64,000 nucleotides of DNA from Vicugna vicugna (Eukaryota), in NCBI GenBank assembly GCA_013265495.1, contig MU059972.1, positions 947,915 to 1,011,914 of the forward strand. Direction: 5' to 3'. The notes beneath the pieces were generated by a model, which saw only the letters and a program-made list of their open reading frames with translations, ran no database searches and was not told the origin of the DNA. Below, in pieces: positions 510-48,881 of this stretch. The position numbers and the translations under genes were made by a program. Within the stretch, counting starts at the first letter, position 1. Every line of letters starts with the position of its first letter.

Positions 510-816
510 TACTTCCTACAAGGAAAGTAGAATATATACAAATCTAATAAATAATGAAGGACCAACCCAAGATCTACAAATGCTCACTCTAACAGGCATA
601 AAATCCAACGAACCACGACAAGTGAACCTCGAGTGACAGAGCAAAGGAGCTCAAGCACTTTCCCCTTTCACAGAGAACTGCGGCCAACGGGCAGGCACTG
701 CGGGCATCTCCAGCAGGATCCTGACGCAGTTCAACTTCTTCAAGGAATGTGTTCACTGTGGCAGCCGAAATAATGAAAACAGTTTCTGGGCTGCTTCTTT
801 TACAAAGACTTGAAAC

Positions 817-1876: not shown

Positions 1877-1904
1877 CACTGAGCACAAAAGAGAATGCAG
1901 GGGT

Positions 1905-2706: not shown

Positions 2707-3054
2707 TAGGGGAAAGGGAAAGGGAGACTAGGAAGGAGCAGACGCAGGAGGCCGGCCCACAGAACGGGCAGTGCGCTGCCGACAGCCGGAAGATCGGAGA
2801 CCCCAAGTAGCACCCCCTTTAAGAAAGTGCTGTTTGTGCCTCTTTGGATAGAACTTCACGTCTTGATGACTCAACCTGAACACATGAGAGGTGAAAACAC
2901 GTCCTAAACAAAGCACTGGTGCTTTAAAATGTTCCACTTTGTACTCCCCAGTGTACTTTGTAGTCAATGGCCACGAACAGCACTGTGTCCATTCGGGCAA
3001 AGCAACAGTTAATCTGCAGATCATAACACGTAATAGAAATATAGCTAAAACACT

Positions 3055-3770
3055 TTTTAAAAACAGAATTTTCAAATTAAGATATAATTCATCTATCCTA
3101 AAAGACCCCCACTTAAGTGCACAATTAGGGGTTTCAGTACTTTCACAAAGTTGTGCAATCATCACCTCTAATTCCAGAACATTCCATCACCCAAAAAGGA
3201 AACCTCGTACTCAACGGCTACCCCTTCCCTTCCAGCGCAGACAGTGACGACCTGCTCCGTCTCATGGCCCTGCCGGCCCTGGACGCTCACGGACGTGGAC
3301 GTGCAACAGGGGCCTTTGAGATGGGCTTCCTTCAACGGGCACAGCCCCCCAGGGCTCCTCCACGTCATGGGGTCAGGCCTCTCACCGCACACATGGATCG
3401 TGCTCTGTCTCTCCCCTCACGAGCGAAGGGATGCCCGGACAGCGCCCACTCCGCGGCTGCTGCGGACACTCGCGCCCCAGCCTCCGGGAGGCCTAGGCTT
3501 CCGCTCCTCTCCCGACCGCCAGGCAGGGGCCGCTGGGTCCGCGGCCGCTGCACACGGCACGCTGAGGGGACGGGCCCCAGGCAGCCGCACCACTGCTGGC
3601 TCCCAGCAGCAGGCGCGCGGCTGCCTTCTCCGCATCCTCACCAAACACAACAGACTTCGTTGTATTCCTAAAGTGACTCTCTTGCTGTGGAGGGACCCGC
3701 AGTAGTTTTCCTTCTAGAACGTACTGTGCGCTCGTCGTGTCCTCAGGCTGGCTCTGCGGCCTTCCCGCGT
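3055..3770 (-). mobile_element. Antisense L1 3' fragment, strongly GC/CpG-shifted
   Basis: AGATATAATTCA...AAGTGCACAATT...TTCACAAAGTTGTGCAATCATCACC...TTCCAGAACATTCCATCACCCAAAAGGAAACC and CTCCGCATCCTCACCAAACAC are antisense L1 3' landmarks. Confidence 0.75.
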
Positions 3771-5011
3771 GCACAGGGCACTGGCTACATAGGGAAACCA
3801 CCATGTGGACATCCGACTCAGACGAGCCAGACTGTCCCCAGTGGCAGAAAGCAGCAGCATGGAAATAGCACAGCCAAGAGGACATGCCCCAAGGATGAGC
3901 TGCCCAGGGCCCCCAGCTCCCAGGCATCCTCACCACCAGGCCATCTTGGCACTCAGGACAGGCTCATTCCAGGGCCACCCACAGGATGGGGCTCCAGCGC
4001 CCAACGTCCCCGCCCTCCCCGGGCAGGCAGCCGCGCTCCGGTGAGCCTTGGCATGACCACTCTCTGTCCCTCAAAGCCTCCCCCTTCCTTCCGGCTTCAC
4101 AGCAGGACTCTGGATCCAGAAGAAAGAAGTCTGGCCTCTGGAGCAGAGGGGCTTTGAGGTACTAAAGAGAGGGAACATCGTATATTTTGTACCTTTAACC
4201 TGGCCTCTGAATGGTATGGAATTTGGTATTGGTGGAGCAGTGGACAATGGTGTCACAACGTCTGGAAAAGAAGTACAGGAAGCTGTAGTGAACGTTAGGC
4301 CGCGCGGGGAGCCGGCTCAGCGGGTAGGTCGTCTAGGGTCAGGGCGAACCACGGGCAAGAGCAAACGCCTTCTGCCAGCGTGTGAGGAGGAGCTACGGCG
4401 ACGTGCCCACCAGCGCTGCGCCCAGAGCGGCCCTGACACACAGGCTGCCGTCTCCACGCCAAGTCTCCAGGACTTTAATGCCCACTGCTCACCAGCCCTT
4501 GTCACAGTGCCACCTGTCACAACTACTTGACTCACTCTGTCCACTTTTCAGGATGGATGGCTGGCTTTCAAAGGCCATGCCTCAGCTATTTCGAGATCCA
4601 CGCCAGATGAAAGATATGCTTCTGAGACATCTTGCAGGAAAGAGGGAACTGTCCTCACAGAGGTGGGAAAATGTTAAAACTGGCAGCTTGGGGCATGTGG
4701 CCTTCTAAAAAGGACCGCTTAGAAACAGCTGACATTGCCTACAGTAAAGAGGAGGTCTGCGCTGAGCAGCAGGGCCAGGAGCCTTAGCAAGAGATAGGTG
4801 GGCTGGCCCGGCTCCGGAGTCCTGAAAGCAGCCTATGAAAGGGTCCACTGTCTGACATCAACGTGCCGCTGCTGCCGCCGCCACCACCATAGGCCCTGAG
4901 GACAGCCCTGAGCAGGCCCCAGGGCGCCCGACCAGACTGAACCAGCACCCGTCCTGGGAGAAGCCAGGCCACGTGGACGGGCCATGCCAAGGCTCTCACC
5001 CAGACAATTAC

Positions 5012-5096
5012 CTTTCATGAAGAATCGGCAGGTGGGACGAGGCCTCACCTTCCTGTCACTGGGGTCCTTCACTTCACCCTCTTCCAGGTCATCATC
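5012..5096 (-). CDS. ZC3H18: ZC3H18 coding exon (exon 3), 85 nt, first half of the CCCH zinc finger
   Basis: ttcag|GAT GAT GAC CTG... encodes DDDLEEGEVKDPSDRKVRPRPTCRFFMK plus G, then |gtaatt. Phase 0 in, phase 1 out. The next exon lies left of the window. Confidence 0.96.
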
Positions 5097-8000
5097 CTGA
5101 AACAGAGGACAATGTGACTTGAAGAGAGACTCATCTTAACAAAGGGAAGAGGCGGGAGGGGCATCTACCAACCAGCGTGCTTTCACCAAACCAGAAAGGG
5201 TGCGTTCCCGAGGTCCGGGTCCTGGCCACTCACCAGTTCACCTGCATTTCCCAAACCTCATCCACACAACGGGGATGTCTCAGAGCTCACCTCCAAGACT
5301 GAGGCACCACACCAAAGGATACTCCTACAAGTTCTGTTAGCAGTTCTGAGCAGGACATGGTTACCCTTCAGGTTTTCAATATTTTGTACAGTAAAACAAA
5401 ATATTGTATGTCCTTTAAATTAGATGCCTCCCTCTAATTTAAAAGTCTAGGGGCAGGGAGGAGGAAAGTTAGGTGGCTCAGGCCAGTGAGTGGGCCCACC
5501 ATTAGCTCAGACCTGGGCCCTTCTCTTCTTGTTCTTGGTCCAGAGTTCCTAACCCTGGCTCTAGAGTGACGCAGGAGACTTTAAAGACCAAAGCTTGAGT
5601 GGGTCTCTCCCCAGGGATTCCAAAGAGCAGCAGAGAGCTTAGACAAATGCTCTGCACAACCCACCCCTAGCCCCCACTGCCCCAGGGCCATCTGCACCCC
5701 AGAGTTGAGACCCTGCACCCCTGGGATCGCCCCTAGCAGACAAGCATCCAGCCACCTGACTGAAATCTGTCAGTATGTCCAGGATGGGGCCCCTCACTGC
5801 CCCTTCTCATCCTGTCCAAGGTACCCTAGTACAGTCGATGAAAGGGATCTCAAGCAGGGCGGACCCCACTCCCCCATCTTCCTCAGCACCGCCTCGTCCG
5901 AACTATCGCTCTGTCCCAGCTGGCCTGGGGACACTCCCTGACAGGGGTCCACACTTCTGAGCTCTCCACATTGCCGTGACCTTCTCAAGTCCAGCCTGGC
6001 CACATTCTAGCCTGGGATGAGGAACAGAGTGACTGTGTGTCAGCAGTCAGGATGCACAGGCAGGGCACCAGATTGGGGTGAAGAGCTGTTTCTGCAGGGA
6101 TGTTACTCTCCATGTTCACAAGAGCAGAGAGCTGGGGAGCGGTCACCGGGGCTGCCGAGGGTGCCCTGGGATACTCCAAGGCCTAATAGACAAAACAAGC
6201 AATAAATCACTCAGCAGTAGAAGGTCCTCACCTGCCAACTAACTGTGTGTTTAGCACGATGGCGTTTCAGGTGATGACAAATAAAAGGAGTACCGGAATC
6301 TTAGAGAGTTTCTTGCAAACATAACTCAAGAAAGGGATCTCTGAAGCCAGACTGCCAGCACTTAGCTGTTCCATCGGGTCAGATGTGTGATTAATGGGTA
6401 GGAATTATGACCTGGCGACCCTTGACGATGTGATCGAGAGCAGGGGCCCTAGCGGTCCAGTCAGAAGTAGGCCTGTGGGTCTACAGAAGGCCAGGCGACA
6501 AGGACAATGACGACTAGCCTGGGGGGAGAGCGCCAGGCCCGCCACAGTGTGCAAGCCTGGGAGGAACTCCAGCCTACTGGCAGCGTGCCGCTGGGGTGGG
6601 CACGAACCAGCATGTTCACCTTGAAGGTCCTTATTTATAGCAGACACGCAGTGGGGAGGCCTGAGTTTGAATCCTGCCTGTGTGACTGCAGATGCCCCGA
6701 CCCCAAGCCTTGGTCTACCCAATGGGTTGTACCAGGCTGAAGCCCACCACACGTGGAGCTTGGGCACAGGGCCCCGTGTACACAGGAGCAGAGAGAGCTC
6801 ACCCTGGCACAACCACCAGGTCCCACCAGAATCCCCTTGAACCCCAGATTCTGCACCTGCAAAATGGGGTAACAATACAGGCTGTAATCCCTCACTCAAA
6901 ACCCCTGGAGCCAGACGTGGTTTGGTAATTCAGACGTGTTCCGGCTTTAGAAAGGGGTCTGGAGCAGCACCCTGTCCCCGTCCTGCGGGGGACGAAGCCA
7001 ACAGCTTGGCACCACTTAGTCCCTCAGGGGCTGCGCTGCACGGCCTCCTTCCTTGATGGAGGCGCAGGCAGTGGCTTCCTTGGCTTCCTCAAGGGGACAG
7101 ATGCTGGGAAGCATCTGAGTGGCATCCAGCGGAGTGAGTGCAGTGACGTGTCCCCAGGAAGCCTGAGTGGTGCGGGAAGCCCTTTGGCAGAAGATACTAT
7201 GTATCCAGACACAGAAAGAGCAGGTGCTTCTGAACAGGACAAAACACAAAGTACCACTGCAAGGAAAATGCTTCAAAGCACTTTTATGTGGGTGGACCCA
7301 GAGCTATCACTTCTGACCAGGCCACTGTCCTGCCATCTCTGAGAGGCCAGCATACAGTGTGAGAGTCACCGATGAAAGGAAGGGAACAAAACGTACTCCA
7401 CCCTCTCCTGGGGGATGGCATACTCTCGGGGGCTGAAGTTCTGTTCACCAGATGACAAGTAAGATATAAAAACAGAAACCAAGGAATTGAGCAAAGGAGA
7501 GGATGGGGAGACCAGACAGTGGGGCTGGCGTCTGTAAAGGCAAATCAAAGACCCTTGAAGAACATTCGATCTACTCAGCAGCCTCCGAAGGAAGCAGTAG
7601 TTCTGGCGAGACGAACCGGAGGCGCTGGTCTAAGAGAGGAAGACCGCGCGCAGCGCAAGGCCACGGTGGTGGCTCCGGCGCTCTTCTGAGAGACACGCAG
7701 GGAGCAGAAACAAAACCACACGTTTCTAGTCCTCCTAAGTGTGGCATCCTGCATGGGCACGACTACTGATTAGACAGGGCTCACCCGTGGTTCAGGCGTC
7801 AGGGTCCTCAGGTCCCCTCGACGCCCCCTCCACAAATAAGCCAGTGCTGCTAACAGCTGGCCCACCACCCTATTTGCAAAATCCCATCCCCACCGCACAA
7901 GGAAGTAGCATTTCCAGAAAGGCATCTGCTTCTGAGGGCAGCACACAAAAAACATATAAAGGTAACTCAAGGCCTGAGTTATAAACTGTGGTTTAGACAA

Positions 8001-10799
8001 AAAAATTTCAAGGGTTTATTGTACAAATTGATGTCATTATCACGGAAACTCTCAGCAGACTAGAAGAGTTGGGGAGGGTGGGGGTGACTCCCTCCCAAAC
8101 CAGTTCACCTGTCCCAGTGACCCCCAATCTAACCCTAACCTACAAGGAAAAGTGCTTCTGAGTTAAGAGGAGAATAAATCACAGGGCCTTTTAGACTCTT
8201 CCACTCAGCTTGCTATTCCCAGCAATTCTGGGCCTGATGCTATGGGCAGGAAATGGGCAGACAGGCGGGAGGGGCTGCTGGGCACGGAGAAGCTCAGAGG
8301 CTTCCGTGAATGTACATCTTCGAGGTATACACTAAACTACACATTTCCTCCTCACAAAAACATCCAGGTAGTTCACCTCTGATACCTGGAAGGTGACAGG
8401 GAAAAAGCCCTCTGGGATGGGTACTTCCCACTAGGACCAGAAGCTACCTGGCAGGGACTTGAACTAAAGGGGACTAGACCAAAGCCTGCTGGAAGGAAGC
8501 AGGCTGTTCATGGACCCAAGCACACACCTCTAGTTCCCTCTCCATCTTGGGAAAGAAAGATACAAGTGTATGCTTGTGGATACACGGGATCCTGACAGGG
8601 AAGGAAGGGCCAGAACCGGGACAGAGAGAGCAGGAAGACGGCCCAGCAGCAGTGATTCAGACGCCAGCTGACGCGTGTCTACGCCGGGCTCTGCCAACGC
8701 AGGCTCAGGCTGGTGCTGGTCACCCACGCGCAGTGCCAGACTGCCCTCTGTTCGGAAGGCTCTCCAGTGCAGACGTCCCGCCCACCACCATGCCTCATCT
8801 CGATGGCACTCAACTTGGCATGCCCCAGAGCACTGCCTCCAAGGTGCCAGGTGCTAGGGATGGAGGGAGCCAGCCACACAGGGGCCGGACTCGGGAACTC
8901 GTGTTCTTGGAGGAGCAGGTGCGGGGAAGCAGCAGAGACACACACACTAATGGCCTGGTTACTTCAGACTGTGTGTGGAAGCACCACAACGGTGCCCAGG
9001 CAGATCTAACAGGAGAGCCAGGGGCGGTAGGCAGGAGGCCTACAGAAAGGAGGTGACACTGAGGCCAGTAATTACAGGGTGTGGAGGAGCCCGCAGTCAC
9101 AGGCACGGGCAAGAGCAAAAATAACCCAGAGGAGCTCCTGGAAGGCAGGTGCGCTCCTGCGAAGGCCAAAGTCTCCATTCACAGTGCCCAGCCCCGTGCA
9201 GGCCCACCGGTCCCCAAGGATGGGGGACAGTTACACCCCCAGTGCGTCACAGTGAGCCTGGCACACCGCGGGGCCCGCAGAGCTGAGTGGAGCTGTTCCA
9301 GTTGGGCTGTGGGGGCCTCACTGGAGGTGCCAGGCAGGTACAAGTCTGTTCAACTGGCCAACCAGGCGGGGTCGGTGGGCAAGGGGGCTCCAATGCTGCC
9401 CCGGGGGAGACCAACAAAGCTGGACGCAGCAGGAACGCCACGGCGCAGCGAGGCTCAGGTCCCTGCGACTGAACACTGGCAGCAGAGGAGGCGAAGTCTG
9501 CTACCATGCGTTCAGCAGCGGAAGCAAGCAGCATCTGCAGCTGGGCCTTCCTAACGGGACACACGGCGCCCAGAACCGCCGGCCACGGCGCCCCCCGCTG
9601 CCGGGACCCCTCACCTTCCTAGTGGCTTTTCTCTCCGTAAACTGAAAAATCAAACTCACAGGTGACCTCAACCAGTGACTTCACCTTCCACTCCCAAATT
9701 CCACCCAAACTGATTCACTGGAGTCTCTCGGCATCTCTTTCCCTCTGGCAACCCTGCTGCCAGGGTTAACTTTCTAAAGGGAGCTTGGAAAGGAGCTGGA
9801 GCTGGCAAAACCTGAGGACAGTTGCATGATCAGGTCTCGACAATACCACTTTCAATAAGATAATATTAAGCAAAGGCTATTAATACGTGAGACCACCTCC
9901 TAAACTTAAGTTATGAGAGTATCTAAACCCCTAAGCTTTAACTACACACGCATGCCCCACAAATTCTGTCCCTGTGAACCGACAAGCACGTCTTTTAAGA
10001 CCAGGCACACGCGTGGCTGTGCGGCACTGCCTCACCTTCCAGGACAGAGCTGCCCGTGAAGCTGCAGCTGCGCGCCTGGACAGCAACCTCTCCCTCCTTA
10101 ACACAGGGCCCTCCTGAGGGGTACTCCTCAGGCCCACCTCTCTCCACAATGACTCTCAACCAGGATCGCCCCCCAGGATGCTTAACACTCCAGATCCTTT
10201 CCCTCTGCTCTGCCTCCCTCTCCCCTCCTTTGAGTACAAGCTTTACTCAGTAGGGCTTCAGGCTCCGCCCCCCAAACTCAACCTCTTAAACGATGGTGAT
10301 TAAAGTTCTTTCAACAGGATCATCTGTCATAAAAACCCAAACAACCCACATCTAAGATGATCATTACCAGTTACCTTCTCCTTACCCTGAAGGCCAGGTG
10401 AATGTAAGTAAGTTCTAAGGATGTGACAGCTTGGTCAAAACCCAAGGTGTTCTGATGCGCAACCCCATTTTATCCAGTGAGGGCCTTTTTAGGGATACTT
10501 CCATAGAAGCTGGGGCCCGCATCAGACAAGAGGCCATGGGGCAAAGAAAAAAATGAATAAAAGAACAGACGAAACTGGAAGGAAGGAGTTTTTCAGCCTC
10601 AAGAACCTAACAAGAACTGAAACCCACAGAGGTTCTAGTTGACTGCTAACTCAAGTACTACTCTGAGACAGCGAAGACAAAGGGTGAAAACTACTGCCTG
10701 TTAAAAAACTCCAGAATTTTAATACGACCAGACGGATGAGCGAGGAGGGCCTGTGGAACTCCCGCCAGCTACCGACTGGCAGTTTCTCAATCCAGCCTA

Positions 10800-11498
<699 letters not shown>

Positions 11499-17229: not shown

Positions 17230-18280
17230 GCGCGTCTTAGGCCACAGCCAACGTCCAACTTGTGGCCGCCAGGAAGCCGAGGGAGCAAGTTGCAGGAGGC
17301 TAGGAAAGCTCAAAGCTCCCGAAGAGCCTATCCCCAGCTCGGAGAACGAATCCACGCGCCTCCCTCTGCCGCCCCACGTCTTTGTAGGCGGCAAAGAGCG
17401 CCACGCGAATGTCCCGGAAGAGGAATGACAGCTTTGAGAGAATCAACCCCACGGCAGGGCGCGGAGGTAGCCGCCGGGCGCTTGGGCTGAGGAGATTTCA
17501 GGGACCCTGGCCAGGTCGTCGCGGACGGGAAGCGGGATCGTGCCTGGGTCGGCCTCCCCTTCCAGGGGCTCAAGAGCCACGCTTCGGCCGGTGGGCAGCC
17601 TGGAGCGCTCCCCGGAGGCGGAGGCGGCAAGGCTCCGGGGCCTCGGCTCCGCGCCGCCGCCACGCTCCCCGCTCGGCCGCCTCGGCCTCCTCCTCCCGCC
17701 GACCCGGCCTCCCAGCCGCCGCCACCGCTTACCTCAGCGCGAGGACGGGGAGGGGGGCCACGGCTCCGCGGGGGTTGGGGCGGTGCGGGGAAGACGTCCC
17801 TCGGTCCTTCCGCTCCTCACAGGCTCCGACTTGAGGCGCGACGCGGGCGGAACAAACGGGCTCCACTACCCTCGGGGGCCGGCCATTGTGCGACGTCATC
17901 AGGCCGCGACGGTTGTCCTGCGGCCCGGCGGGCTTCCTTGACTCGCCCCGCCCTCCGCCTGCTTCCTTCCGGCCTCCTCGCTGCCGCCTCCGCGAGGCCC
18001 CGCCCCCGCGGCGCGCGCCCGCCCGAGCCCGCCACGGCGTAGGCGCGCCTTCGGCCCCGCCCCCCGGGGGGCGGGTCTCCGAGCGCGCGCACCGCCCGAT
18101 GAGCCGCGGGGAGGGCTGCCCGCGCCACGCGGCCACGTGACGGGCGAGCGCGGGTTCGCGCCAGGCGACTGGCGCTGCGGGCGGGACCCCGCGATCCCGG
18201 GGCTCCGAGCTCATCTCCCCGGCGAGCCTGAGGAGCTCCCGCGCCACGGGGCGTGCGCGCCCAGCAAAGAGTTAATCCTG
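17230..18280. promoter_or_regulatory. CpG-island promoter of ZC3H18
   Basis: Very dense CpG. YY1-like GGCCATT (17881), CRE-like TGACGTCG (minus, 17891-17898), GC box CCCCGCCC (17946-17953), E-box CACGTGAC (18134-18141). Confidence 0.9.
17733..17870 (-). other. ZC3H18: ZC3H18 non-coding exon 1 (5' boundary approximate)
   Basis: Strong donor GCTGAG|GTAAGC at 17733/17732 inside the CpG island, upstream of exon 2 on the same strand. Confidence 0.75.
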
Positions 18281-18556
18281 TTGGAGAAATGAGCTTAAAG
18301 ATCAATGATGAAGCATTTTAAACTGTTCCCGTGGGATTGGCTAGCTCCTCACTCTATTCCACGTATCAGTTCAACACAAACTGACTGTTTTCGAGATACT
18401 GAGTTTAAGTCTCAAAGCCTAAGCATTTTAGACTGTTTCCGGGCGACTAAATAGCTCTTACTTTATCAAATACAATCAGTTCAACACAAAATCTTATCAT
18501 TTTTTTGAGATGCTGAGTTTAAATGTCAGAGCTTAAACATTTTTAACTGTCGCCAA

Positions 18557-24545: not shown

Positions 24546-25495
24546 GTGTCCTGGGGCCACCGCTTCTCTCCCAGCCCTGCCCTGACTCGTGGGAGCTGCA
24601 GGGGGTGCCGCTTCCGCCGCGCTGCAGGGGCCTCGGCTCTGCTCGGGCCCTGGGTCGGTGCAGCTGATGGGGGGCGTGGCTGCGGAGGTGGGAGTCCAGG
24701 CTCTGAGGGAGCTGGCATGTGGTCCTTCTGGCCAGTGACACCAGCAGGGTCAGAGGGCAGAGGGGTGGGTTGTGCGTGGTGTGGGACCGCGCGGGAACCA
24801 CGACAGGTGGGAGGCTGGCTGGCTCTTCCCGGATCAGGAGCAGAGCCTGTGGGGGCTGAGGCCTGGGAATCCCGGGGCTCCCGGGGCTCCCAGGGCCCCC
24901 GGGCACTTCCGTCTCACTCAGTCCACACAGCTGCCGGCAGCTGGGGAAACAGGCCCCGCATGACTGAAGCCTTAATGTTACCAGTAATAGCAGACATGGG
25001 CCCAGAACCAGCCTCCAGGCCCAGAACTTTCCAGGCCCCGCCGTTTCGTGGGAATCTCGCCACGTCCCCGAGAAGCCGGTGCCTCAGTTCTCCCGTTTCA
25101 CAGCTGAGCTAGCTGGGCTTGGAGATGCTGTGCGGCATCCTAACGACAAAGGGCAGCTGGGCCAGGGCTCGCTGGGCGTTCTTCCGGGTTCAGCCTCCCC
25201 GCGAGCTCACGGCTTAGGTCCGACCGTTGTCTGTGTTTACGCACCAGGAGACTGAGGCTTGCAGAGTGGCTGACTCGCAGACACTATTTACAGCAGAGCC
25301 CAGAACGGGCACTCCTGGTCCTCTCTCAACCTGACTGAGCAGTCCCGTCCCAAGTGCCGGGTTCCTGCGTGTCCCTGGGGCCAGGCTCTCAGAGCAGGCC
25401 GGTGTTCACGGAGGCCCGGCCGCGGGCAGTGGATGCCTCCTGGAGCCCCTCCCCCTCCAGTGCCTGCACAGCCAACACAGAAATCAGGAAGAGGC

Positions 25496-25830
25496 CGGGA
25501 AACACCCAGCAAGGTGCCCCTGGCTTGCAGGGACACTGTCCCAAGCCCTGTCGTGTACAAGGTGGCCTCGGTCTTCCTGTTGCTCCTCGTGTGTGCTGTG
25601 GGCATTGCGGGCAATGCCGTGGTGGTCCTGGTGGTGCTGACCACATAGGACATACACACACCCACCGACTGCTACCTGGCTCGCCTGGCCCTGGCTGACC
25701 TTGCCGTACTGGTGGCTGCAGGGCTGCCCATCGTCTCCCACAGCTTGGCTGGGCAGTGGGTCTGTGGCTACACTGGCTTCCTGGGCATCAGTGCCTCCTC
25801 TTGCTCCGTCCTGGAGTTCACCGTGGAGAG
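25496..25830 (+). pseudogene. TRHR2: TRHR2 pseudogene, first coding exon (TM1-TM3)
   Basis: [70 protein letters not shown]...[13 protein letters not shown](R) aligns to rodent Trhr2. TAG at 25646-25648, no ATG at the expected start, ~8-codon TM3 deletion, donor reads AG|AT at 25831. Confidence 0.92.
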
Positions 25831-26396
25831 ATCGGCGCTCCCGGCCCCTCCTGCATGCCAGGGCTTCCTGGCCGTGATCCTTGGTAAACTGAGGCTGCTC
25901 CCCATTTATGGGGGGGAGCCTGTGGGACCCTGGAGTAAACTGGCATCCAGGGTGGGCGAGGGGGCAGGCACCAGGAAGCAGGTTGTCGTCTCACCACAGC
26001 TGCTGACTTGCTGCTGGATGCCAAGGCACCCTGCACTTCTCTGGGCTCAGTTTCCCTGCCCGGAATGTGGGCAGTGGACTGGGCACCCTCTCGGGGCTCT
26101 TCTGGCTCTGATCTGTACCCCCGAGAGGCAGACAAGCTCTGCTCTTCCGATTCACCTTCTGCCCTCTCCTCTCAAGACTGGCTCCTTGTGTTCTGCAGCC
26201 CGAGTCTCCCTCAGCATGGCCACCTCGCTTCCCAGATGGTCATGGCCCTCCAGGTCCCTGTAAAAGGGCCAGTTCAACCATCGAGGCCACATTTGGTCCC
26301 CAGCGGGGAATCTGATTGGCCGAGCGGGGTCAGTGTCCCCACCGTGGCCCAATCACATGGGCAGGTGGGTGGGTCACATGACCCTGTGGCCCGCAG

Positions 26397-26836
26397 GTAC
26401 ATCGCCATCTGCCACCGGATGAGGGCACACACCGTGTGCACCTTGGCGCAGGCCAAGCGCATCATGGCAGGCGTCTAGGGGGCCACGTCCACCTACTGCC
26501 TGCTCTGGTTCTTCTTGGTGGACCTCGATGTGGACGGGGACCGGGGCCTGTGGTGCAGCTACACGGTGTCCCGCGGCCTTTGCCTGCCCATCTACCTGCT
26601 GGACTTCACGGTCTTCTTTGTCACGCCCCTGCTAGTGGCCACCGCCCTCTACGGGCTCATGGCAAGGATCTTATTCCGTGGTTCCCCCCGCCCACTTGCC
26701 CCAGCACAGGTGCCAGCATGCGGGCAGAGAGGCCCGGTGGGAGGCAGGAGCCTGGGAGAGGCAGCCCCGCAGGCCTGGTGGGGACGTGACCGGCAGCTGC
26801 CCCCGGGCCAGAGGCTTCCCTTCTCCCAGGAAGCAG
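26397..26836 (+). pseudogene. TRHR2: TRHR2 pseudogene, second coding exon (ERY motif-TM5-ICL3)
   Basis: ccgcag|G TAC ATC GCC ATC TGC CAC: YIAICHRMRAHTVCTLAQAKRIMAGV*GATSTYCLLWFFLVDL...LPIYLLDFTVFFVTPLLVATALYGLMARILF. TAG at 26476-26478. The frame shifts before ...SPRKQ|gtacga. Confidence 0.92.
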
Positions 26837-27554
26837 GTACGAGGTCTCCTGGGGTGGGAGGGGCCGGATTGCCAGAGATGGGGGACGTGGGAGAGGTGTG
26901 GGTGCAGGCACAGCACCCGCCCCCCGCACTGGACGTCCCCCTCACAGACACCCCCCCCAACCCCCACCAGAATGGGTGCAGGTGGGGCCATTTGGGACAG
27001 TGGTGAGCACGAGCAGGCTGCAGGAGAAGCTGGTTCATGGTGTGCGTGCTGTGTGGTCCTTCCCCCTGAGCCCCTGATTTCTCGTCCTTCAAGTGGAGGT
27101 GACAACAGCACACTGGGGGGCAGGCCGGTGCAGGGGAGGCAACCAGAGTGCCAGCAGCGGTGCTGTCCACCCGGGCCTCACTGCGGCATCAGGGTCCCAG
27201 GGCCCTGTTCCCAGCATCCGGTCTTTGCTCGCTGGGAACCTGAGAGGCCTGGGGGGCAGGGTGCACAAGAGGCTCAGGGCGTGGGTATTTACCACCGGAG
27301 GTGGGACTGTTTCACGAGTGTATCAACCAGCACAGCCTTGAATGCCGGCCCTGGGTCTCTGCACGGGAAATGTTTAGCACAGCGCCCAGTGGATACGCAG
27401 CAGTCGTGTGATTATCTCAGTAACGATCTCATCTCTTACTCAGCAGCCTCGTCCTGGGGCAGCAGCCATGGCTGTGGCTCTGGTGGCATCTGCTTGGCCA
27501 CCAGCCACGCGGTGGGCCCAGCACCAGTGGCTCCACAGCCCCGCCAGCCCACAG

Positions 27555-27830
27555 GTCACCGAGGTGCGAGTGGTGGTCGTGCTGCTCTCTGCCATCCTGT
27601 GGACGCTCAGCCCCCTGGGGGCCCAGCCTCTCCAGGACCCCTGGGTCCTCCTCTTCTGCCGCACCTGAGTCTACACCAACAGCCCCATCAGCCCCATCAC
27701 CTACTGCCTCAGGTCCCAGAAGTCCAGGGCGGTCATGCGGGTGCCGAGGAGAGGAGCCCGGAGGCGCCCAGCCTGCCTCACCACCACCAGCCACGGTGGG
27801 TTCTGAGAGACCCCCCCCCGGAAGATGCAG
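27555..27830 (+). pseudogene. TRHR2: TRHR2 pseudogene, last coding exon (TM6-TM7; 3' end approximate)
   Basis: ccacag|VTEVRVVVVLLSAILWT[~7 codons missing]LSPLGAQPLQDPWVLLFCRT*VYTNSPISPITYCLRSQK. TGA at 27666-27668. NPxxY has decayed to SPITY. Confidence 0.9.
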
Positions 27831-29700
27831 ATGGGCAAGAGTGGGGTCACGGGCCCTCAGGCAGCTGGGCGCCCACCCCAGCAGCAGGGGCCTGGTTTCA
27901 GCATCGTCTGAGGGCTGCCCTCCTCCTGCCTGGCTCCTCCTGCCGTCCTTGGTCTGCTCCCTGCTGGGTCCTGTCTGCTGGCGGCTGGCAGGGCCAGGAG
28001 AGGGGCAGACACCCCTTTGCCAGTGGCTCTTAGCTCCCAGCTCCCCAGGGACTTCTGTCCCCACGAGCTAGGACCTGAGGGTGTCCTGGCCAGGGGGGTT
28101 CCATAAGGGTAGTGCTCCCGCCTCCAGAAGCGCGGGAGGTGAGGAACGGGAGGCTGGGGGTACCCTAGCCTCCATCGGTGTAGAATTATGACCTTCCACT
28201 GCTCCTACTTACCACTTCAAGCACTTTTTCCCAGGTATTACAGGAATGTGCTTCCAGTCTCTGGTGACACCCTGTCAGTCTGGCTGTGGGCAGAGCTGGC
28301 ATGTGGCATTTTCTAAGGTGGATGGTGCCACACAGAAAGGGCACCCAGCTCCAACCACCGACACCCAGAGACACCTCATGCTGCACCCCCACTGGCTTGG
28401 AGGTCTTCTCCAACTGGCCACGCACATGTGCTAAGGACGGCCGGTACCTAAGCCTCCTGCCTCCTTCCCTTTGCGTTCAGCCTGGGTCACAGTCGTCGAC
28501 AGAGCAGAGTGCTGTGTTTCTTCCAGCACCTCAGCCAGAAGTGGGAAGCCGTTCCTGAGCCCCTCGCCCCCAAGCGTCAAGCTCTGCTCCCGTGAGGCCG
28601 GCTTTGACCACTGCCCCCTTCATCCAGGGCCCACGGGGGAGTTCAGGGTGTGGGCAGGCTTCCACCTCCATCTCTTATCTGGGTGGACACTGCAGCCAAA
28701 GGCACTGACAATTCAGGGGGCAGGTGGCAGAAAGTGCCCCCACCCAGCAGCGAGATGTGTTTCTGGGCCAGCTTGGGGGGTGCCCACGGCTCTCAGAACT
28801 GCAGGCCCGTTTCCTCCCCTCACTGCCCAGGGACCAGGCTCCCTGTGGAAGTGGGTTCAAAATGGCGGCTGGGACCCAGATCAGCAGTCGTCACCTCTGC
28901 TGTGACTTCAAGCGCTAGCAGAGCCTGGGCCGAGGGCCTCATGGGGGCAGCCAGCACCCGGCAGCGCTGGCTCCTGGGTCAAGGGCCCAACAGGCGGCCT
29001 GCTGTGTGCTGGCTGGTCCAGCCCCACGCGGGTCAGGGAAAGCGGTGCCTTGACCCGGCCTGGCTGTGGCGCCCAAGCTGGATGCACTGATGCTTAGCCC
29101 TCCATAGGTGCACGTGGCTGTCAATCCTCCTGATCCACCAGTGAGGGGAGAGTGCATGGGTAAGTGGGCATGGCCACTGTACGTGACAGTGCCAGGACAG
29201 CGGCCACCTAAGGTGACCAGGGGCCCTGCTGGCCTGTCCACTGGACCCTCCTCCTGGTGGTCCCTACTGACGGTTAGGGGCCCCAGGCCCGGGAAAGCCC
29301 AGTGCACGCAGGACTCACGTTTACCCCAGTGATGACCTGGTCGGGGGGACCTCCACCTGTCCCCCTTTTGCGATGAGGACCCTGAGCCCAGAGACCTTCA
29401 GGCGCAGTCACCTGTCCCCCTGTGGGCGCACCTCTGCGATCAGGATAAAGGCTTGGGGCCCTGACCCATCCGCATGCCCTTTGAGATTATTTTCCCCTTG
29501 GGCTCCTGCGATGCTCATTAAAGCAGATTTTCCGTGGACACTTGGGAGGAAGTCTGGTGTCCAGAGGTGGCCCAAAGGTGGCCTGCGCAGTGGGGCACCT
29601 GTGTGGGGCGGAGGCAGGCGGGAATGAGGGAGTAGGCGGGGCGACAGAGGGGCTGGGTGCAGTGGGCACCTGGGCGTTAGCGTCTCCTGCGGCCGCTGAG

Positions 29701-35965: not shown

Positions 35966-35984
35966 NNNNNNNNNNNNNNNNNNN
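35966..35984. other. Assembly gap (19 N) at the 3' end of the provirus
   Basis: Run of N. Confidence 0.99.
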
Positions 35985-36089
35985 TGTGGGGGGCAGGGGC
36001 AGACGAGCAGGACTGACCTCATGAGGGAGACACAGGCAAGGAGACAGGAGCTGTGAGTGGGTGGGCTCCAGGCTGCCACCGTCACAGGG

Positions 36090-39000
36090 CGGGCTGTCCT
36101 CCCGGATCCGGGTCAGGTGGAGTTTGGTTGCCCCTGTGGGGACGCAGTGGGAACACGGGGGTTTGTTGGGGTTCTTAGGGTTGGGATCAGGAGGGGCCTG
36201 TTTTGGTGGTGAGTTGTGCGCCCAACGTGGGAGGGACACGAGCCTGGCCGTGGAGGGGGTGGTTGCTGCAGCCTGGCGGGGTGCCTGCCAGCCGGGCGCT
36301 ATGAGGCTGGGAGGGTCTTCTGTCGCAGGTGTACCCAGTCTCCGGGGAGAGGGCAGGGCTGACTGGTGGGTTCGCGTGTGGGGGGCGACGGGAGGCTCTC
36401 CCCAGCACACTGTCGGGTGGCGTGTCGGCTGAGGGGCAGAGCAGGCCGGCGTCAGGGCGTGGGGACCAGAGTCGCAGGGCGGCTGTGTAAGGCAGGAGGA
36501 CGCCCGTGTCACAGCTCGAAGAGAGTCAGGTTGGAGGGTTCTGAGGAAGCATGTGGAGTCTAAGAAGAGCTAACGGAAGAAGTCGGGTCTGGGAGAGTTT
36601 TAGCTCTAGAGCCAGTTCAGTTCAACGCCGTTTTAGCAGGGCATTGCCACCCCCCCCCCACCGGAGGACTGGGGCCTGTGAGGGGTACGGACCTTCCGGG
36701 AGGTGTCCGGGGCTCTGATGGGCTGTTGGGGGATCTGGGAGCTGAAGGCTGGGCCGCTGTCTGTGGGCTGGCTGGGAGTCCGAGTCGGGGGGACGATGTG
36801 TTGTCACAAGACTGAAGAAACAGCCTGGGCCTTTTCTGATGCGGATGGGAAAGCCTCAGTCCAGCCAGCAAAGCAGTCAACTAAGGTCAGAAGATGGTTC
36901 AATCTTTTGTCGGGAGGCATGTGGGTGAAAGCCAGCCACCGGCCTTGTCCACGGAGCTGTCCTTGTGCTTGGTGTGTGGGAGCCGCTGGCGGCCTAGCGG
37001 CTCCTCAGGGGGTGCTCTGGAACAAGTGCAGGCAAGAGCGACGCGCGGTAAGGTGGTTTAAAGTGGGGGACAGGAAATGCAGGGTTGCTGTCTGGTGGGG
37101 GGTGACCGGAGGGCAGCTGAGAGTGGATTTGCCCTAGGATCTGGCTTCCTTGTGATTTGGGGAGCACGATTTCGGGAATGAGCACGAACCATGCCCGAAC
37201 TGGAGGGCAGCCCTGACTTGGACGTGCGTGTTGCTCACCGCGGGTGTGTGTGGGCTCGGTCGGTGGAAAGGCGGGGAGGAGTCGGGGTGTGTTCTGGGGC
37301 TCGACGGCCTCCCTGCGGCCCGCTCTGCATTGGCTCTACAGGGGCGCTGCCTCAGGCTGCGTCGTTTTCTGGGGCTGGGCGTCCTTTGCAAAGGGGCGTA
37401 GCTTCGGCCACTGGAAGGAAGGCTGCCTCTGAGAGTCTGTGAGTCAGTTTTCCGTTAGAGACGGGGTTCCGTGTGTGTGGAGTCCCCTTCCTGCCACATG
37501 GCGGCGTGGGTGCGAATGGCACGGGACGCACATTTAGGGTGGGTGTGGATGTTTCCTTGCTCACCTTTGGTAACGTGAGGGCTCTGGTAAGTGTGATGAG
37601 TTCAGCTTGCTGTGAGGTAGGGCGAGGGGCCGGGGGCTTAGCTTTGAGGACGGTGTCCTGTGTAACGACGGCATAGCCTGCTTGGGGACGAAGGTCCTGG
37701 AAAGAGCTCCCATCGATAAACCAGGTAGGGGCCTCAGGAAGGGGAGGTCAGAGAGGTGAGAGAAGAGACAGGGAGGGGAATCTAGCACCTTGAGGCGTGA
37801 GTGGCTGGTTGTAAGGGATCCGAGTGAGTTGGTACAAGGTGGTGGGGTTAAGAGGGTACAGTGCTGCAGGGACAGGGAGGGTCCTGGAAGAACGTGGCGT
37901 GTATTTGTTGTAAGCAAGAGGGAGAGAGGTCGAGAAGGGCGCGATGGCCGCGTAGGTCTGTGAACTGCGTGAGGAGGACACAAGGAGGGGCTGGCGAAGA
38001 GGGAACATTCTGGCTTCGGCTGCCAGGGCTGCAGCGGCACCGAGGGTTTTCGGGCATGGGGACCATCCGGCCACGACGACAGGCCACTGCGCAGGGAGTC
38101 TCTCCGAGTGTCTGGCCCAGGACACCAGGGCAGGCTCTGAGTGGCAGTCAGGTGGAGGTGAAAAGGCTTTGTAGGGCTGGGGGGCCCTCGGGTGGGTGCA
38201 TGCGTTCGGGCCCGCTTTAGTGTTTTGATTGGGCCAGAAATGGGTGTGGTCGGGTCCAGGGGTTCTTGCGGCTCTCCCTCCGCGGCCTGGGAGAGGGGTT
38301 CTGTAGGAGGCTGAAGCTGGGGGTCCAGATTCTGAAGTAGCTGGCCAGGCCGAAGAAGGAGAGGAGTTCGGGTCTTGAGCTTGGAAGAGGCGACGTCGTC
38401 GCGTCAATGAGGGCTTTCCGTTCTTCGGGAATGGCCTGGAGTGACGGGGTAATGGCGAGCCCAGGATGAGTGACCTGTGGCCGGGACACTGGAGCTTTGG
38501 TGGAGGTCACTCGGTACTTGCGGTCGGCGAGGAAGTTTAGTGGTTGGGTAGTATGGGAAATGGAGCGTTCCTTTGAGGGACTGCATAGAAGTACGCGGTC
38601 CACGTATCGTAAGAGAAGGCGAGGGGACGGATCAGGGAGGGAGAGACCATGGCTTAAGGCTTGGCCAAATAAGTGGGGACTGTCCAGGTCAGCTGTGCTG
38701 ACCGGGTGGTGTCTGGATCGGGACAGGTAAAGGCGAACGGCTCCGGGGAGGAGGGACTCAGGACTGTGAAGAAGGCGTCCTTGAGGTCAAGGACAGGGAA
38801 GCGAGTGGCTTGAGGAGGGACATGTGAGAGGAGGTACAGGGACTAGGCACGGTGGGTGGATGGCGACATAGCTTGGTTGGGCCAAACGGTGGGTCCCATT
38901 CATTTTTTATGGCGAGAATAGGGGTGCTGTGAGCGACTGTCGGCCGAAGGGGCCCGGCTCTCAGACGACGAGCGATTATGCCTTTAGGCCCCTGAGTCCT

Positions 39001-39520
39001 TGGAGGCCAGAGGGAGCTGTGTCTGACAGACTGTGGTTGAGGGTCTAGGAGGGAGATCGAGGTGGGGGTGTGGTGGGAGGTGACCACGGGCTGTGATGCG
39101 CCCCGGGTGACCAGGGTCGCCTCAGGAAGAAGGAGAGACCGAGCAGGTATGCTTGAGTTGGGGTGTTTCTTGACAGCAGAGGAGATCAAAGTGGGAGGGG
39201 TAAAGATGGATCGCCCCCCATGAGCGTTCGGAGGGCCTCTCAGCCCAGAGTGGAGGCTGGGCAAGCGGGGTCACTAGGAGGGCGTGGGTGAGCTGGGCTG
39301 GGCGTAGGGGGCGGAGGAGGGCTGGTTTGCCCTGGTCGTGAAGGAGTGCCGTCAGCGCCCACAGCAGAGGTGGAGGGCCTGTGCGACGTCCTTGGGATTC
39401 TGGTAAAACAGGATAGGTGGCCCGTGTCCACCAGGCATGATGCAGGTTTACCAGATACCGTCAGAGTTACCCGTGGCTCATTGTGAGGGGTGGGGGTGGG
39501 GCAACGGACCCCGGGGCTTG
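36090..39520 (-). pseudogene. pol: ERV pro-pol (protease, RT, RNase H, integrase), disrupted
   Basis: LVDTG (39434-39420), LDLKDAFFTV (about 38795-38762), YVDR in place of YVDD (about 38606-38595), ELLSFFGLASYFRIW, WFIDGSS (about 37722-37702), QQAELITLTRAL, integrase WLAFTHM (36938-36918), TDSGPAF (36764-36744), PHRPQSSG, and a C-terminal LTRI. Confidence 0.93.
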
Positions 39521-41022
39521 TCGGTCTTCAGTGGCCCGGCCGAGGAGCTGAGTCACGGCAGAGTGGACGGGGATCGGGGTGTGCTCAGGCCAGAGGGGTA
39601 CTGCCGAGGACGGTCCAGTTTCCAGTGTCCCTTTTGCTTGCAGGGCGGGCAGGGCCCTGGTGGGGGCCTAGGGCTGGGGCAGCGCTTGCCCGACGGGCAG
39701 TTTTGCCGCACCTGAGGCAGGCGCCGGTGGCCCCCAGGTCCTTTGTCTTTGGGAAGACGCTGCCCCTTCCTGTGGGGCCTTCGCCAGCACCTGGCGTTTG
39801 GCCTGACCGCACTTTCCCTTTAAGGCTTTTCCCTCCTCCTCTCTGCTGTTGGAGACCTTGAAGGCCAGTTTTATGAGGTCTCGCTGAGGGGTTTGCAGAC
39901 CGCCTTCTGGTTTTTGTGGGTTTTTCCTGATGTCTGGGGCGGACTGGGATGTGAAATGTAGATGAAGGTAAACGCGGCCCTCCCTGGAATCGGGGTCGGG
40001 GCCGGTATAATTTGCGTGGCCTCAGCAAGACGAGGAAGGAAGAGGGCAGGGTTTTCGTCCAGACCTTGGGTGATCTCCTCGCCCTTTTCATAATTAACGG
40101 CTCTCAGGGCCGCCTTTCCCACGCCTGTCAGGAGGCAGGTAACGGGATGGGCATGCCCTGGGCGGCCTAGGGAGGCTGCCTGACAGTCTCAGTCGGGGTC
40201 TGTCTTGGGGACCGCTGCCGCCGCCGGGGTGATTGTTGGGGCATTGCTGGCGGAGAGTGGCAGCATGGCCCTCAGCTGACACCCAGATACGCCCCGGTCC
40301 TCGCGGGAGACGTGAGGGAAGTGAATGTCACGCCAGGCCAGGCCACAGGGCCGGGTGAGATACAGCAGTTCTTTTCTGGAAGGTGACAGGGTCTGCTGAG
40401 TACGACCCGCATCGTTTTCAATGGTTGAGAGGTCGGAGAGGGAAAGGGGACACGGACTCAGAGGATGCCATCGGTGCCGGCCACCTCACCGAGGGGTTGT
40501 GGAGTCGGGCTGACGGTTGGGTGCGAGATCTCATGTGGGGGGGGGGGGGGAGGGGGGCCACGGCGGAGAGGGTCGGGGTTGTGGAGAGAAGGAGGGGGTT
40601 TGTCTTTGCAGCTGAATTCGAATGAGGAAGGATTGGTGGGGGTGAGAGGATTTTCGGGGTCGGCTTTTGTTTTGGGGGGCTGGGGCTGCCGAGGAGGGGG
40701 TTCACGTAGGAGGGGGTCTGGTGGGGAGAGCAGGACCGGCAGAGGGAGCGACGAGATCGGAGGCACCAAAAGGCTTGGAGATGGGGGCCCCTGACCACTT
40801 CCCATGGCACTGGAGGAAATTGTCGACATCTTTGAGAATGTGCAAATCAAAAGTGCCATTTTTGGGCCACTGGCTGCCATTGTCAAGTTTATATTGTGGC
40901 CATGCAGTACTGCCAAGGAAGGCGAGAAGTCTGGGTTTGACCACCTCCTGAAGGTGGAGGTCTCGAATGTGTTGAATCAGCCTAAAGAAGTGTCCTGGGG
41001 GCCTTAGGAGGGGACTGCCCAT
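39521..41022 (-). pseudogene. gag: ERV gag (MA-CA-NC), disrupted
   Basis: ATG GGC at 41022. AWPQYKLDNGSQWPKNGTFD (MA), QAFWCLRSRRSLC, PLGEVAG..VPFPLSDLS (CA start), ITQGLDENPALFLPRLAEA (major homology region). Two decayed zinc knuckles: CLRCGKT.. and CPPCKQKGHWKLDR. Confidence 0.9.
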
Positions 41023-45310: not shown

Positions 45311-46603
45311 TAAGGGCATGGAAACTGAAGCCCTTTTCAGTGCAGCACTGCCTCCCACTGGCGTTTGCAGGGATGGGGTGTGCAGGATGCCTGCCTCCCC
45401 TTCCAGCATCTGTGCTCACCAGCAGCCAGGGACGGACATGCACCTTGCCTTAGGTTTAACGTTTTGAGAACAGAGCGATGTCGGCCTTTGGTGGCCAGAC
45501 TCGGGGGTGGAAACTCGAACTCTCCACGCAAATTAATGCAGAACAATGCAAACGAGGAGCAGGACTGAGGGGTCCGTAAGCCTCCCAGTCCCAACCCAGG
45601 AGGGCAGAGTCAGGGACGGTCCTTACCAGGAAGGCAGCTCAGCTCCCTGGGGCCCTGGCCTGTCCGGTGGCCCTGCCTGGTCACGGCCTGGTACTTAGGG
45701 CCAGCGGAAGGGAGTGTCAGATGGGCCTGAGGACTGTGCTTGTCCAAACCCAGGCTCCCTGGCCTCACCTCTGAGGGCTGGGTGGGAGGGAGCTTGCCTT
45801 GAGCTGGAGAGTGAGTCTGGCTACGTGGCAGGAAGCACCTCTGGTATTTGGGGGCAGAGAAAGTCGGTCAGATTGCACTTTAATCTGCAGTAAGGTTCTA
45901 GGTAAGATTATATTTGGAAAAGACGCTACTTCAAGCTAAGGGACACCAGGCTGGAGGGTGCCCACCGCCACCTTGTTGCCAAGTGGCAAGACCACAAGTT
46001 GTGGCTTGGTCGTGACTTATGCTGCCCCCGCAGGGCAGACTGGGGGTGTGTGACATTAGTCCTTGTGCCCACTGCCACCCCCACTCTAGGACAGGCTCCC
46101 CCTCGCCCTAGGGGTCGCTGTGGGCCCTGGTGCCCCTCCCTGGTCCACTCTCTTTCCTGGGGCCTGTCTGCTGTTTCGCCCTTCTTCCCCCATCAGCTGG
46201 GGCAACCACAGGGCTGCATCCTCCCCCGTGATGCTCCCATTCCCGGAATCCTTGGTGGCCTGTGGCTGTACAGGTGACATCCAGGCCCCAGACCCACGCA
46301 GACAGAACTGTAGGCTGGTTAGGACCCAGCTCTTCCCTTTGGTGTCTGGTGATCAAACCAGAGCTTCTGGCTGCGTCCTGGGGTGGTGCGAGCAGTGGAC
46401 CTAGAAGGGCCGTGCCTGCTCTTCCTGTGCCCCCAAAGGGGCCCAGGGCAGTGCCATCAGCCTGGAGTTGGGCTTCTGAATCCTGTCTGCAGTGGCCTGT
46501 GTGTTCTTGGTGGTGGTGCTGGCCATGCGTGCGCCTACCCTGCAGGGCCCCTTTGCTTAGAGAACTAGGCTGCTCCACCACTGTGCTCATCAAACTGAAC
46601 TTC

Positions 46604-46609
46604 TTTATT
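46604..46609 (-). terminator. ZFPM1 polyadenylation signal AATAAA
   Basis: TTTATT on the plus strand about 150 nt downstream of the stop codon. Confidence 0.8.
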
Positions 46610-46755
46610 AAGTGCCAAAGGTCCAAGCGGGGTCTGCCCCCCGCAGCCCCTGTGCTGAAGCCTGTGCTTGGAGCGTTTCCCAGGAGCAAGGGTGCCCGGG
46701 CCCGTGGCGGCCCCTAGAGAGCAGGCGCGCAGGTTCCACCCTCCGCGCGCGGCGC

Positions 46756-48535
46756 TCACTTCACGTGCTCGGCCGCGTGCGAGGAGCAATAATACTTCTT
46801 GTGGGCGATGAAGGTGGACAGACTGCTGAACTTGATGTTGCACAGGCGGCAGTACCTGTGGTTGCCGTTGGGCACGGGGGCCGCTGACCCCTGGCTAGGG
46901 GTCTGCACACCCTTGTCCGAGTGGGAGGGGGGCGCCGGCACAGCTTCAGGGGACGGGGCCGGCGGCGGGCCGGGCCGTGGGCTGCCGGCGGGCGGCTCCC
47001 GCAGGTCCTGGCCGTTGAGGCCGTCGCGCTGGGCGGCGGGCGAGGGCGTCCGGGCCTCGGCGCCGGGGCCGGCCGGGGGCTTGCCCAGCAGCAGGCCGTG
47101 CGCCAGGCGGAAGTGCTCAATGAGGTCGCCGCGGACTACGCCGTTCGGGGGGCAGTAGGGGCACACGACGGCGGGCGGGTCCTCGGGGGAGGCGCGCAGG
47201 CGGCGCAGGGCGGCGGGGCACGAGAACTTCTTGTGCGCCAGGTAGGCCTCGAGGCTGTGGAAGCTCACGCGGCAGGCCGTGCACTCGTGGTAGTCGGCCA
47301 GGGCCGGCAGGCCCGGCGCGGGGCCCGGGGTGGCGGCGGCTGGCGTCTGGCGCCGCGGCTTTTTGCTCAGGTCGATGGGGCCTTCGGCGGGATCGGAGCA
47401 GCTTCCACCTCCACCTCCGCCTCCACTTCCGCTTCCGGGCCGCGGCGCGGGCGCGGCGGGCGACGTGGGGGCGGGGCCGGGCGGCGTGGAGGAGGGGCCG
47501 GGCGCAGCGGGAGGGAGGCGGGGCCGGCCGGCGACGGGGCGGGGCCGGCCGCGTGCAGCTCGTAGAGCTTGCGGCGCCTGCGCGTGCGCACCGGCGGCGC
47601 GGCGGGCGCGGGGGACCCGGGGGTTCCAGCAGGTGCCGGCCGGCGCGGCGGTGGGTCGTGGCGCGAGGCGCAGTAGTAGCGCTTATGCACCGTGTAGGTC
47701 TCGTGGCGGCTGAATCGGATGTTGCAGGCCTCGCACAGCGTCCGGCGGGGGTCGTCGTCCTCGTCCGCCCCGCTGCCCGGGCTCGGGCTGCCTTCGCTGC
47801 CCCGGCCGCAGGCCTCGGCCTCGGCCTCGGGCGTGACCGCGCTCCTGGCCTCGTCCTCGCGCGTCCCGGGGCCCGGCGACGAGCACGGTGCGTCGGCCTC
47901 GGCAGGCGGCGGGGCTGGGGGCGCGCGCGGCGGGGCGGGGGCCGCCTTGGGCCTGCGGGCGGGGGGCCCGTCGTCGGGCGGGCGGCGGCCGGAGCAGTAG
48001 AGGCGCTTGTGCACGTAAAAGTTGTTGATGTTGTTGAAGGTGATGTCGCACTCGAAGCACGTGGCGCCCTTGGGAGCCCCCGCGAAGAGGCCAGCCGGAG
48101 CGCCCACCCCCGCGCCCGCCTGCAGCCGGCTGTGCACCAGCTCAGACATCTTGGCCAGGATCTCGGAGGCCGGGGGCGCCGCGGGCAACTGCGGCAGAAA
48201 GAGCGCGCCGGGCCCCGGGCTGGAGCCGGGTGTGGGGCTGGACAGCTCCGCCTTGACGCGCACCGGGCTGGGGCTGGGCGGCGATGGCGTGCGCGACGTG
48301 GCCGGGGGCCCTGGCTCCGCCTCGGGCTCTTCTGCCGCCTCCACCTTGATGCTCCTGGGGGTCGCGGGGGGCTCGCCGCTGCTCCCGTTCTGGGGGGCCG
48401 CTCTGGCCTCTCCGTTGGTGGCCTCGGCCAGCGCCTTCCTGTCCAGTCCAGGCGATGGGGCAGTAGCCAGGCCCAGGTCAGCAGAGGCCAAAGGACTGTG
48501 CAATGCCGTGTGCTGCTGGAAGCCGGCCAGGCTGT
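46756..48535 (-). CDS. ZFPM1: ZFPM1 (FOG1) last exon, with an apparent 1-nt frameshift near 47460-47545
   Basis: ctgcag|AC AGC: DSLAGFQQH...[15 protein letters not shown]...[22 protein letters not shown]...[22 protein letters not shown]...RRRRKLYEL, then in a second frame [10 protein letters not shown]...[22 protein letters not shown]...[34 protein letters not shown] at 46756-46758. Confidence 0.95.
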
Positions 48536-48734
48536 CTGCAGGAAGACCCCAGGGGCCACACTTCAGGGCTGGAGCAGGACCTGCCTGGGCCAGACCTGAG
48601 GGCGGGGGAGGGCAGGAAGGGATTGCTGCGCTGGGCAAAGGCTGTGGCTGCCAAGGCCGAGACTGACACCAACCCCCTCTCACGGACTAGCCTGCCTCCC
48701 CCTCCCCGGTCCTCAGGGGGCCCCCGGGGCTCAC

Positions 48735-48881
48735 CTGGGGGGAGCTTGGCAGTGGGGTGCCCGGCCCCTGGTGAGTAGATCTCAGCCTTAGAGCCCGGCT
48801 GGCAGACCATGTGGTTGGTCACCAGGTGGCTGTAGAGGATGTCCCTTGTGGTGGAGATGAAGCCACAGCTGTGACAGACCC
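48735..48881 (-). CDS. ZFPM1: ZFPM1 exon, 147 nt
   Basis: ctgcag|GG GTC TGT: GVCHSCGFISTTRDILYSHLVTNHMVCQPGSKAEIYSPGAGHPTAKLPP, then G|gtgagc. Confidence 0.96.

Follow-up and report, generated by a model that had tools for sequence, protein, structure and literature searches.

TRHR2 is the type 2 thyrotropin-releasing hormone (TRH) receptor, a class A GPCR. Its absence in primates and in other mammals has been published, and the gene has been described as "likely lost ... in many mammals", with TRHR1 retained across vertebrates (PMC2117022; PMC7587745). The locus considered here lies in a window of 64,000 nt (the whole stretch of DNA that was analysed, to which coordinates refer unless another locus is named) and resembles these published absences in that it represents a lineage-specific loss of this gene, but differs from them in that each exon of the relic can still be read and the loss can be dated to after the divergence from ruminants. 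A literature search returned nothing linking TRHR2 to camelids and no description of artiodactyl TRHR2 relics. The relic is a new, well-characterised case of a known and repeated loss and not a new phenomenon. We regard the region with great confidence as the remnant of an orthologous TRHR2 that has stayed in place, a gene that died early on its own branch and has evolved neutrally since, after a period of ancestral constraint.

The three coding exons of a TRH receptor are all still present on the plus strand within 25477-27911. The first-pass annotation had set the limits of the pseudogene at 25496-27830; this core stands but the relic is wider, beginning at 25477 and running to the conserved ancestral stop, a TGA still present at 27909-27911, ca. 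80 bp past the earlier end. The exon 1 relic (25477-25830) covers the N-terminus up to the first two bases of the ERY Arg codon and is followed by an intron of 566 bp (25831-26396) that has AT for GT at its donor and an intact acceptor (CAG, 26394-26396). The exon 2 relic (26397-26836) extends from the end of TM3 to ICL3 and is separated from the exon 3 relic (27555-27911; TM6 to the C-terminus) by an intron of 718 bp (26837-27554) which keeps its GT...AG boundaries. Both intron positions match those of TRHR2, the first falling within the ERY Arg codon (phase 2) and the second after ...SRKQ, at the ICL3/TM6 boundary. The exon boundaries were validated with the bat gene, whose aligned codons give the annotated protein (P0198) without a single difference. 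An extension of exon 1 to 25912 suggested by tblastn was rejected as low-similarity read-through into intron 1 that is not coding. The whole gene spans 2.4 kb in the window instead of ca. 4.2 kb, with 566 bp vs. ca. 0.9 kb in deer for intron 1 and 718 bp vs. ca. 2 kb (ca. 1.3 kb fewer) for intron 2; bat and horse also hold more sequence between the matching blocks than the window does.

The earlier statement that no ORF captures the gene agrees with the translations of 25400-28000, where three GPCR blocks are distributed over the three forward frames with none spanning the gene. In frame 2 the class A GPCR block reads ...FTVER, frame 1 reads YIAICHRMRAHTVCTLAQAKRIMAGV followed, across a stop, by GATSTYCLLWFFLVDL...LYGLMARILF, and frame 0 reads VTEVRVVVVLLSAILW...LLFCRT followed, across a stop, by VYTNSPISPITY.

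The relic is flanked by exon 1 of ZC3H18 and the last exon of ZFPM1, that is, in the syntenic position that had been proposed for it between these two genes. Comparison with the TRHR2 loci of deer, ibex, horse, muntjac, bat and one rodent (Onychomys) indicated by blastn that the window is collinear with those of deer, ibex, muntjac, horse and bat across exons, introns and tens of kb of flank; collinearity rests on these five non-rodent loci, the Onychomys locus having been compared with 10-kb flanks only, short of the neighbouring genes. Upstream, a minus-strand ORF (10797-11492), whose 3' end reads into an intron, contains the first coding exon of ZC3H18. It matches PDB chain 9t3x_C (E 4e-14, near-identical over 36 residues), which is MBP fused to a fragment of "Zinc finger CCCH domain-containing protei...", and the matched sequence is presumably the N-terminus of ZC3H18. 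No CCCH finger motif was detected on the minus strand of positions 1-11000, so that the finger exon of ZC3H18 lies outside the window. Protein atlas matches of the ZC3H18 exon were discarded as low-scoring look-alikes restricted to its acidic region. About 6 kb upstream of this first coding exon, a GC-rich, CpG-island-like stretch at 17300-18300 probably corresponds to the ZC3H18 promoter and a non-coding first exon.

Downstream, the last exon of ZFPM1 (FOG1) was located on the minus strand at 46517-48776, with 78.6% nucleotide identity to the bat exon over 2.3 kb. The bat gene found downstream of TRHR2, on the opposite strand, carries the Pfam domains FOG1-like_PR and CCHC_ZFPM2, and the minus-strand ORF 47370-48683 of the window matches CCHC_ZFPM2 with an E value of 3e-10. 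Between the relic and this exon, a run of 19 N (35966-35984) precedes ca. 4 kb (36000-40000) with a strong positive GC skew of 0.29-0.32, in which no tandem repeat was detected. The relic is a disabled gene at the orthologous locus with its introns retained, as expected of a unitary pseudogene and not of a processed or duplicated copy.

When intact TRHR2 proteins were compared to the window by tblastn, E values ranged from 1e-16 to 1e-46 per exon, a match far beyond chance. In phmmer searches against all PDB chains, the exon 1 and exon 2 pieces retrieved the human TRH receptor with E values of 1e-15 and 1e-16, respectively, every match other than a TRH receptor being no better than 7e-3. In a profile-free search of 1.8 billion representatives, the best matches of the exon 2 piece were of the TRHR2 type, 66-74% identical and ungapped, and included a Capra ibex model, a turtle "TRH receptor-like" protein and fish proteins named TRH receptor 2; alignment of TRHR1 to the same piece requires a gap of 3 residues in ECL2, which is longer in TRHR1. 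Pfam gave weak 7tm_1 matches under the family cutoff, which carry no information given how short the relic pieces are. Searches seeded with the turtle protein and a bat protein returned annotated placental TRHR2-type proteins from bats, horse, many rodents (including rat Q9QWW3), two afrotherians, white-tailed deer and muntjac, together with those of marsupials and platypus.

In trees for which the relic exons were read through with an X placed at each break, the identification made at first pass was upheld: in the ML tree the relic is nested in the placental TRHR2 clade (SH-aLRT 100), as sister to deer, and in a second tree including more fragments it is sister (94) to the ruminant clade (99), the support for this relation being 91-94 across the two trees. 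The first-pass annotation had also named a best match to TRHR1 or TRHR3 as evidence against a TRHR2 origin. TRHR1 (human, PDB 7wkd/7x1t) and the TRHR3-like receptors (pheasant, Dromiciops, goat P0247) have TM motifs that can be aligned to the relic, as members of the same receptor family, but both types fall outside the TRHR2 clade. With functional TRHR2, as found in rodents, horse, bats and afrotherians, the relic shares the orthologous locus, the three coding exons and the ungapped ECL2, at 52-69% amino-acid identity per exon to such proteins (e.g. rat Q9QWW3, P0214; Hipposideros P0198; Equus P0206). Unlike these, it has no start codon, four stops, four frameshifts, a dead donor, truncated TM3 and TM6, and has evolved neutrally.

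Exon DNA was aligned with that of six other species and projected on the bat reading frame. At least eight independent lesions had been announced; all those listed were recovered, and the total reaches 10 disabling changes affecting start, frame or splicing, plus two in-frame deletions in TM segments. The start codon is lost (ATG to ACA, 25477-25479). At 25646, a TAG stands where orthologues have CGG or CGA (Arg), CAG (Gln, muntjac) or TGG (Trp, ibex); the second stop, TAG at 26476-26478, replaces a TGG and the third, TGA at 27666-27668, a TGY. The donor of intron 1 reads AT at 25831-25832, where the six species compared (deer, muntjac, ibex, horse, bat, Onychomys) all have GT, and the ICL3 frameshift corresponds to a 1-bp insertion in or beside a run of C at 26684-26690. 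The two in-frame deletions remove 24 bp after 25780 (TM3) and 21 bp after 27604 (TM6).

Several lesions had not been listed before. Exon 1 has a 1-bp insertion near 25504: the start-equivalent and the TM1 anchor are 133 nt apart in the window, against a measured 129 nt in deer and muntjac, and a count on P0198 gives 132 nt for bat. Exon 3 has lost 11 bp after 27734 and a further 1 bp after 27758, the latter restoring the frame, and carries a fourth stop (TGA, 27804-27806; CGA in ruminants) and an in-frame 3-bp insertion at 27814-27816. Disabling changes therefore amount to four in-frame stops, four frameshifting indels, the lost start and the lost donor. Two conserved motifs are also altered, CHP to CHR in exon 2 and NPxxY to SPxxY in exon 3.

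The relic cannot make a receptor. With its stops, its frameshifts and the deletions in TM3 and TM6, it does not encode an intact seven-helix receptor with ligand contacts. The TM3 deletion spans the block aligned to C98-Q105 of TRHR1, of which C98 is the conserved disulfide partner of ECL2; the relic positions aligned to Y106 and N110 of TRHR1 are F and S, and the TM6 deletion takes out MPYRTLV, including the PYR tyrosine. Of the four ligand contacts that have been described (PMC7587745), two lie in TM3 (a Tyr and an Asn), one in TM6 (a Tyr) and one in TM7 (an Arg); three are gone from the relic. In the course of events that we propose, TRHR2 was under purifying selection in the ancestor common to ruminants and the window lineage, then inactivated early on the latter's own branch and left to neutral drift. 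Loss of the start and disruption of the frame by four stops and four frameshifting indels are combined with a first intron that can no longer be spliced at its normal donor and with in-frame deletions of part of both TM3 and TM6. In such an animal, TRH signalling would rely on TRHR1 (and on TRHR3 if present).

Relaxed selection, for which a dN/dS test had been recommended, was assessed from Nei-Gojobori pairwise distances fitted by non-negative least squares on a fixed species tree. Over the 342 codons usable in all seven species, and with the wide intervals of a method that is distance-based and not a likelihood branch model, dN/dS was 0.98 (bootstrap 0.65-1.86) on the window branch, 0.91 on the ibex branch, 0.44 on that of muntjac, 0.42 for horse, 0.40 for deer, 0.36 on the ruminant stem, 0.27 on both the artiodactyl stem and the bat branch, and 0.24 on the rodent branch. 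The window branch has evolved neutrally, as a unitary pseudogene should, and the artiodactyl stem behaves like the branches of species in which the TRHR2 ORF is intact. When a functional rate of 0.27 and a neutral rate of 1 are entered in a mixed-branch formula, the share of the window branch spent in the neutral state is ca. 97% (point estimate) or ca. 52% at the lower bootstrap bound. Camels split from other even-toed ungulates 55-60 million years ago (PMC3514880). If the genome is that of a camelid, this split and a neutral share of at least ca. 52% would make the inactivation at least about 30 million years old. It would then have occurred before camels and llamas separated.

Ruminant TRHR2 (Odocoileus P0212/L001, Muntiacus P0218/L005, Capra ibex P0003/L002) is the sister group of the relic and has in common with it a 12-bp insertion in ICL3 that is absent in horse, bat, rodent, marsupials and platypus, which fits the tree in placing the window lineage among the artiodactyls, outside ruminants. 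Ruminant copies otherwise differ from the relic, the ORF being complete in white-tailed deer (Odocoileus virginianus) and broken in ibex and muntjac at wholly different sites. The ibex pseudogene (L002:12715-17035, GCA_054642885.1) lacks a single base at two sites of exon 1, has GG for AG at the exon 3 acceptor, no longer has its stop codon, and reads ERYSAIFNP and HPxxY in place of ERYIAICHP and NPxxY. In Muntiacus muntjak (L005:11238-11745), an in-frame CAG has become TAG within the artiodactyl-specific ICL3 insert; as a single lesion, it could be an assembly error.

Some of the ruminant gene models call for comment. The ibex "hypothetical protein" P0003 is an artefactual model made of exon 2, an intron read-through and exon 3, while the annotated muntjac protein P0218 omits the end of exon 2, in a gene that also has a 3-bp deletion in TM3. 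In deer (L001:9964-14200), conserved positions have changed (TPTN to MLTN, the Tyr of LYG in TM5 to Ser, DPW to DPR, and a TM6 Leu to Pro), and the receptor may be in the process of being lost or may function differently.

Lesions were tabulated as shared or private, as had been advised, against white-tailed deer, muntjac and ibex. None of those in the window is common to any of the three, and none of the ibex and muntjac lesions is present in the relic. Together with the intact deer ORF, this places the loss in the window lineage after the ruminant split and makes it independent of the ruminant losses. A single ancient inactivation in the artiodactyl ancestor, from which window and ruminant copies would both descend as an already dead gene, could be invoked given that ruminant copies look relaxed or broken too (the ibex lesions, the in-frame TAG in the muntjac ICL3), with dN/dS at 0.91 on the ibex branch and 0.36 on the ruminant stem and with several bovid-like TRHR2 fragments frameshifted; yet the absence of any common lesion, the complete deer ORF and a stem value of 0.27, equal to that of bat and near that of rodent, make this very improbable. 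These data show that the artiodactyl ancestor had a constrained TRHR2, making the losses within the order independent.

It is also conceivable, though we regard it as slight in likelihood, that the relic has retained or acquired a non-coding role, for instance as a lncRNA or as a regulatory element of ZC3H18 or ZFPM1. The exons are ca. 76-78% identical to the ruminant exons vs. ca. 65-72% in the flanks, and the splice sites of intron 2 are intact; however, a higher exon identity is expected because the species compared have kept TRHR2 under constraint, and a dN/dS near 1 together with large internal deletions points to drift. Least credible of all is an error of sequencing or assembly, or a null allele segregating in a species whose gene is intact, since, although the 1-bp insertion of ICL3 and the 3-bp insertion of exon 3 lie in or next to homopolymers (C runs at 26684-26690 and 27814-27816), the relic accumulates ca. 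twelve lesions of varied kinds, including deletions of 24, 21 and 11 bp and four stops derived from substitutions, as well as altered conserved motifs (CHP to CHR and NPxxY to SPxxY), and assembly error could not produce a branch-wide dN/dS of 0.98, a neutral value that supports the old, real loss proposed at first pass.

With an in-place remnant of a gene lost on the window's own branch as the preferred reading, the number of losses among even-toed ungulates can be considered. TRHR2 may have been switched off independently at least three times in this group, in the window lineage, in bovids and in muntjac, with the deer copy intact and fast-evolving, a tally to which we would give slightly less than an even chance. 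If it is true, Artiodactyla would offer a natural series for what TRHR2 does beyond TRHR1, e.g. in central thermoregulatory or arousal circuits.

Outside artiodactyls, a 14-bp deletion in horse TRHR2 (Equus, L003:10005-10130) has taken the canonical ATG out of the frame of TM1, and the NCBI model (P0206) starts from an ATG further upstream, in a different frame, so that the protein has a new N-terminal extracellular tail. More decayed TRHR2 fragments were found in non-artiodactyl mammals (L008:532-4820, from Logan SRR33991135, and P0033, P0044, P0053, P0018 and P0021), of which one is close to horse, two resemble bats and two fall in an unplaced group, and the Nannospalax TRHR2 model is gappy. 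These fragments and this model fit a widespread and repeated decay of TRHR2 in placentals. A TRHR3-like gene of goat (Capra hircus; P0247/P0046 and related fragments), which groups with a marsupial TRHR3-like protein on a very long branch (1.34), may be decaying too. A protein search with the window ORF 26515-27003 returned one bovid-like fragment and nothing else, an exact look-up of seven ATG-started ORFs of the window in the protein collection found none of them, and no host-derived contig turned up in a metagenome scan.

For annotation purposes, the TRHR2 locus is to be flagged as a pseudogene. What is known of TRH signalling is unchanged by the relic, which adds one well-documented and datable loss of TRHR2 and a small data point on the repeated loss of GPCRs. 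TRHR2 being a TRH receptor of rodents that is missing in humans, the range of species that possess it bears on the transfer of rodent TRH pharmacology.
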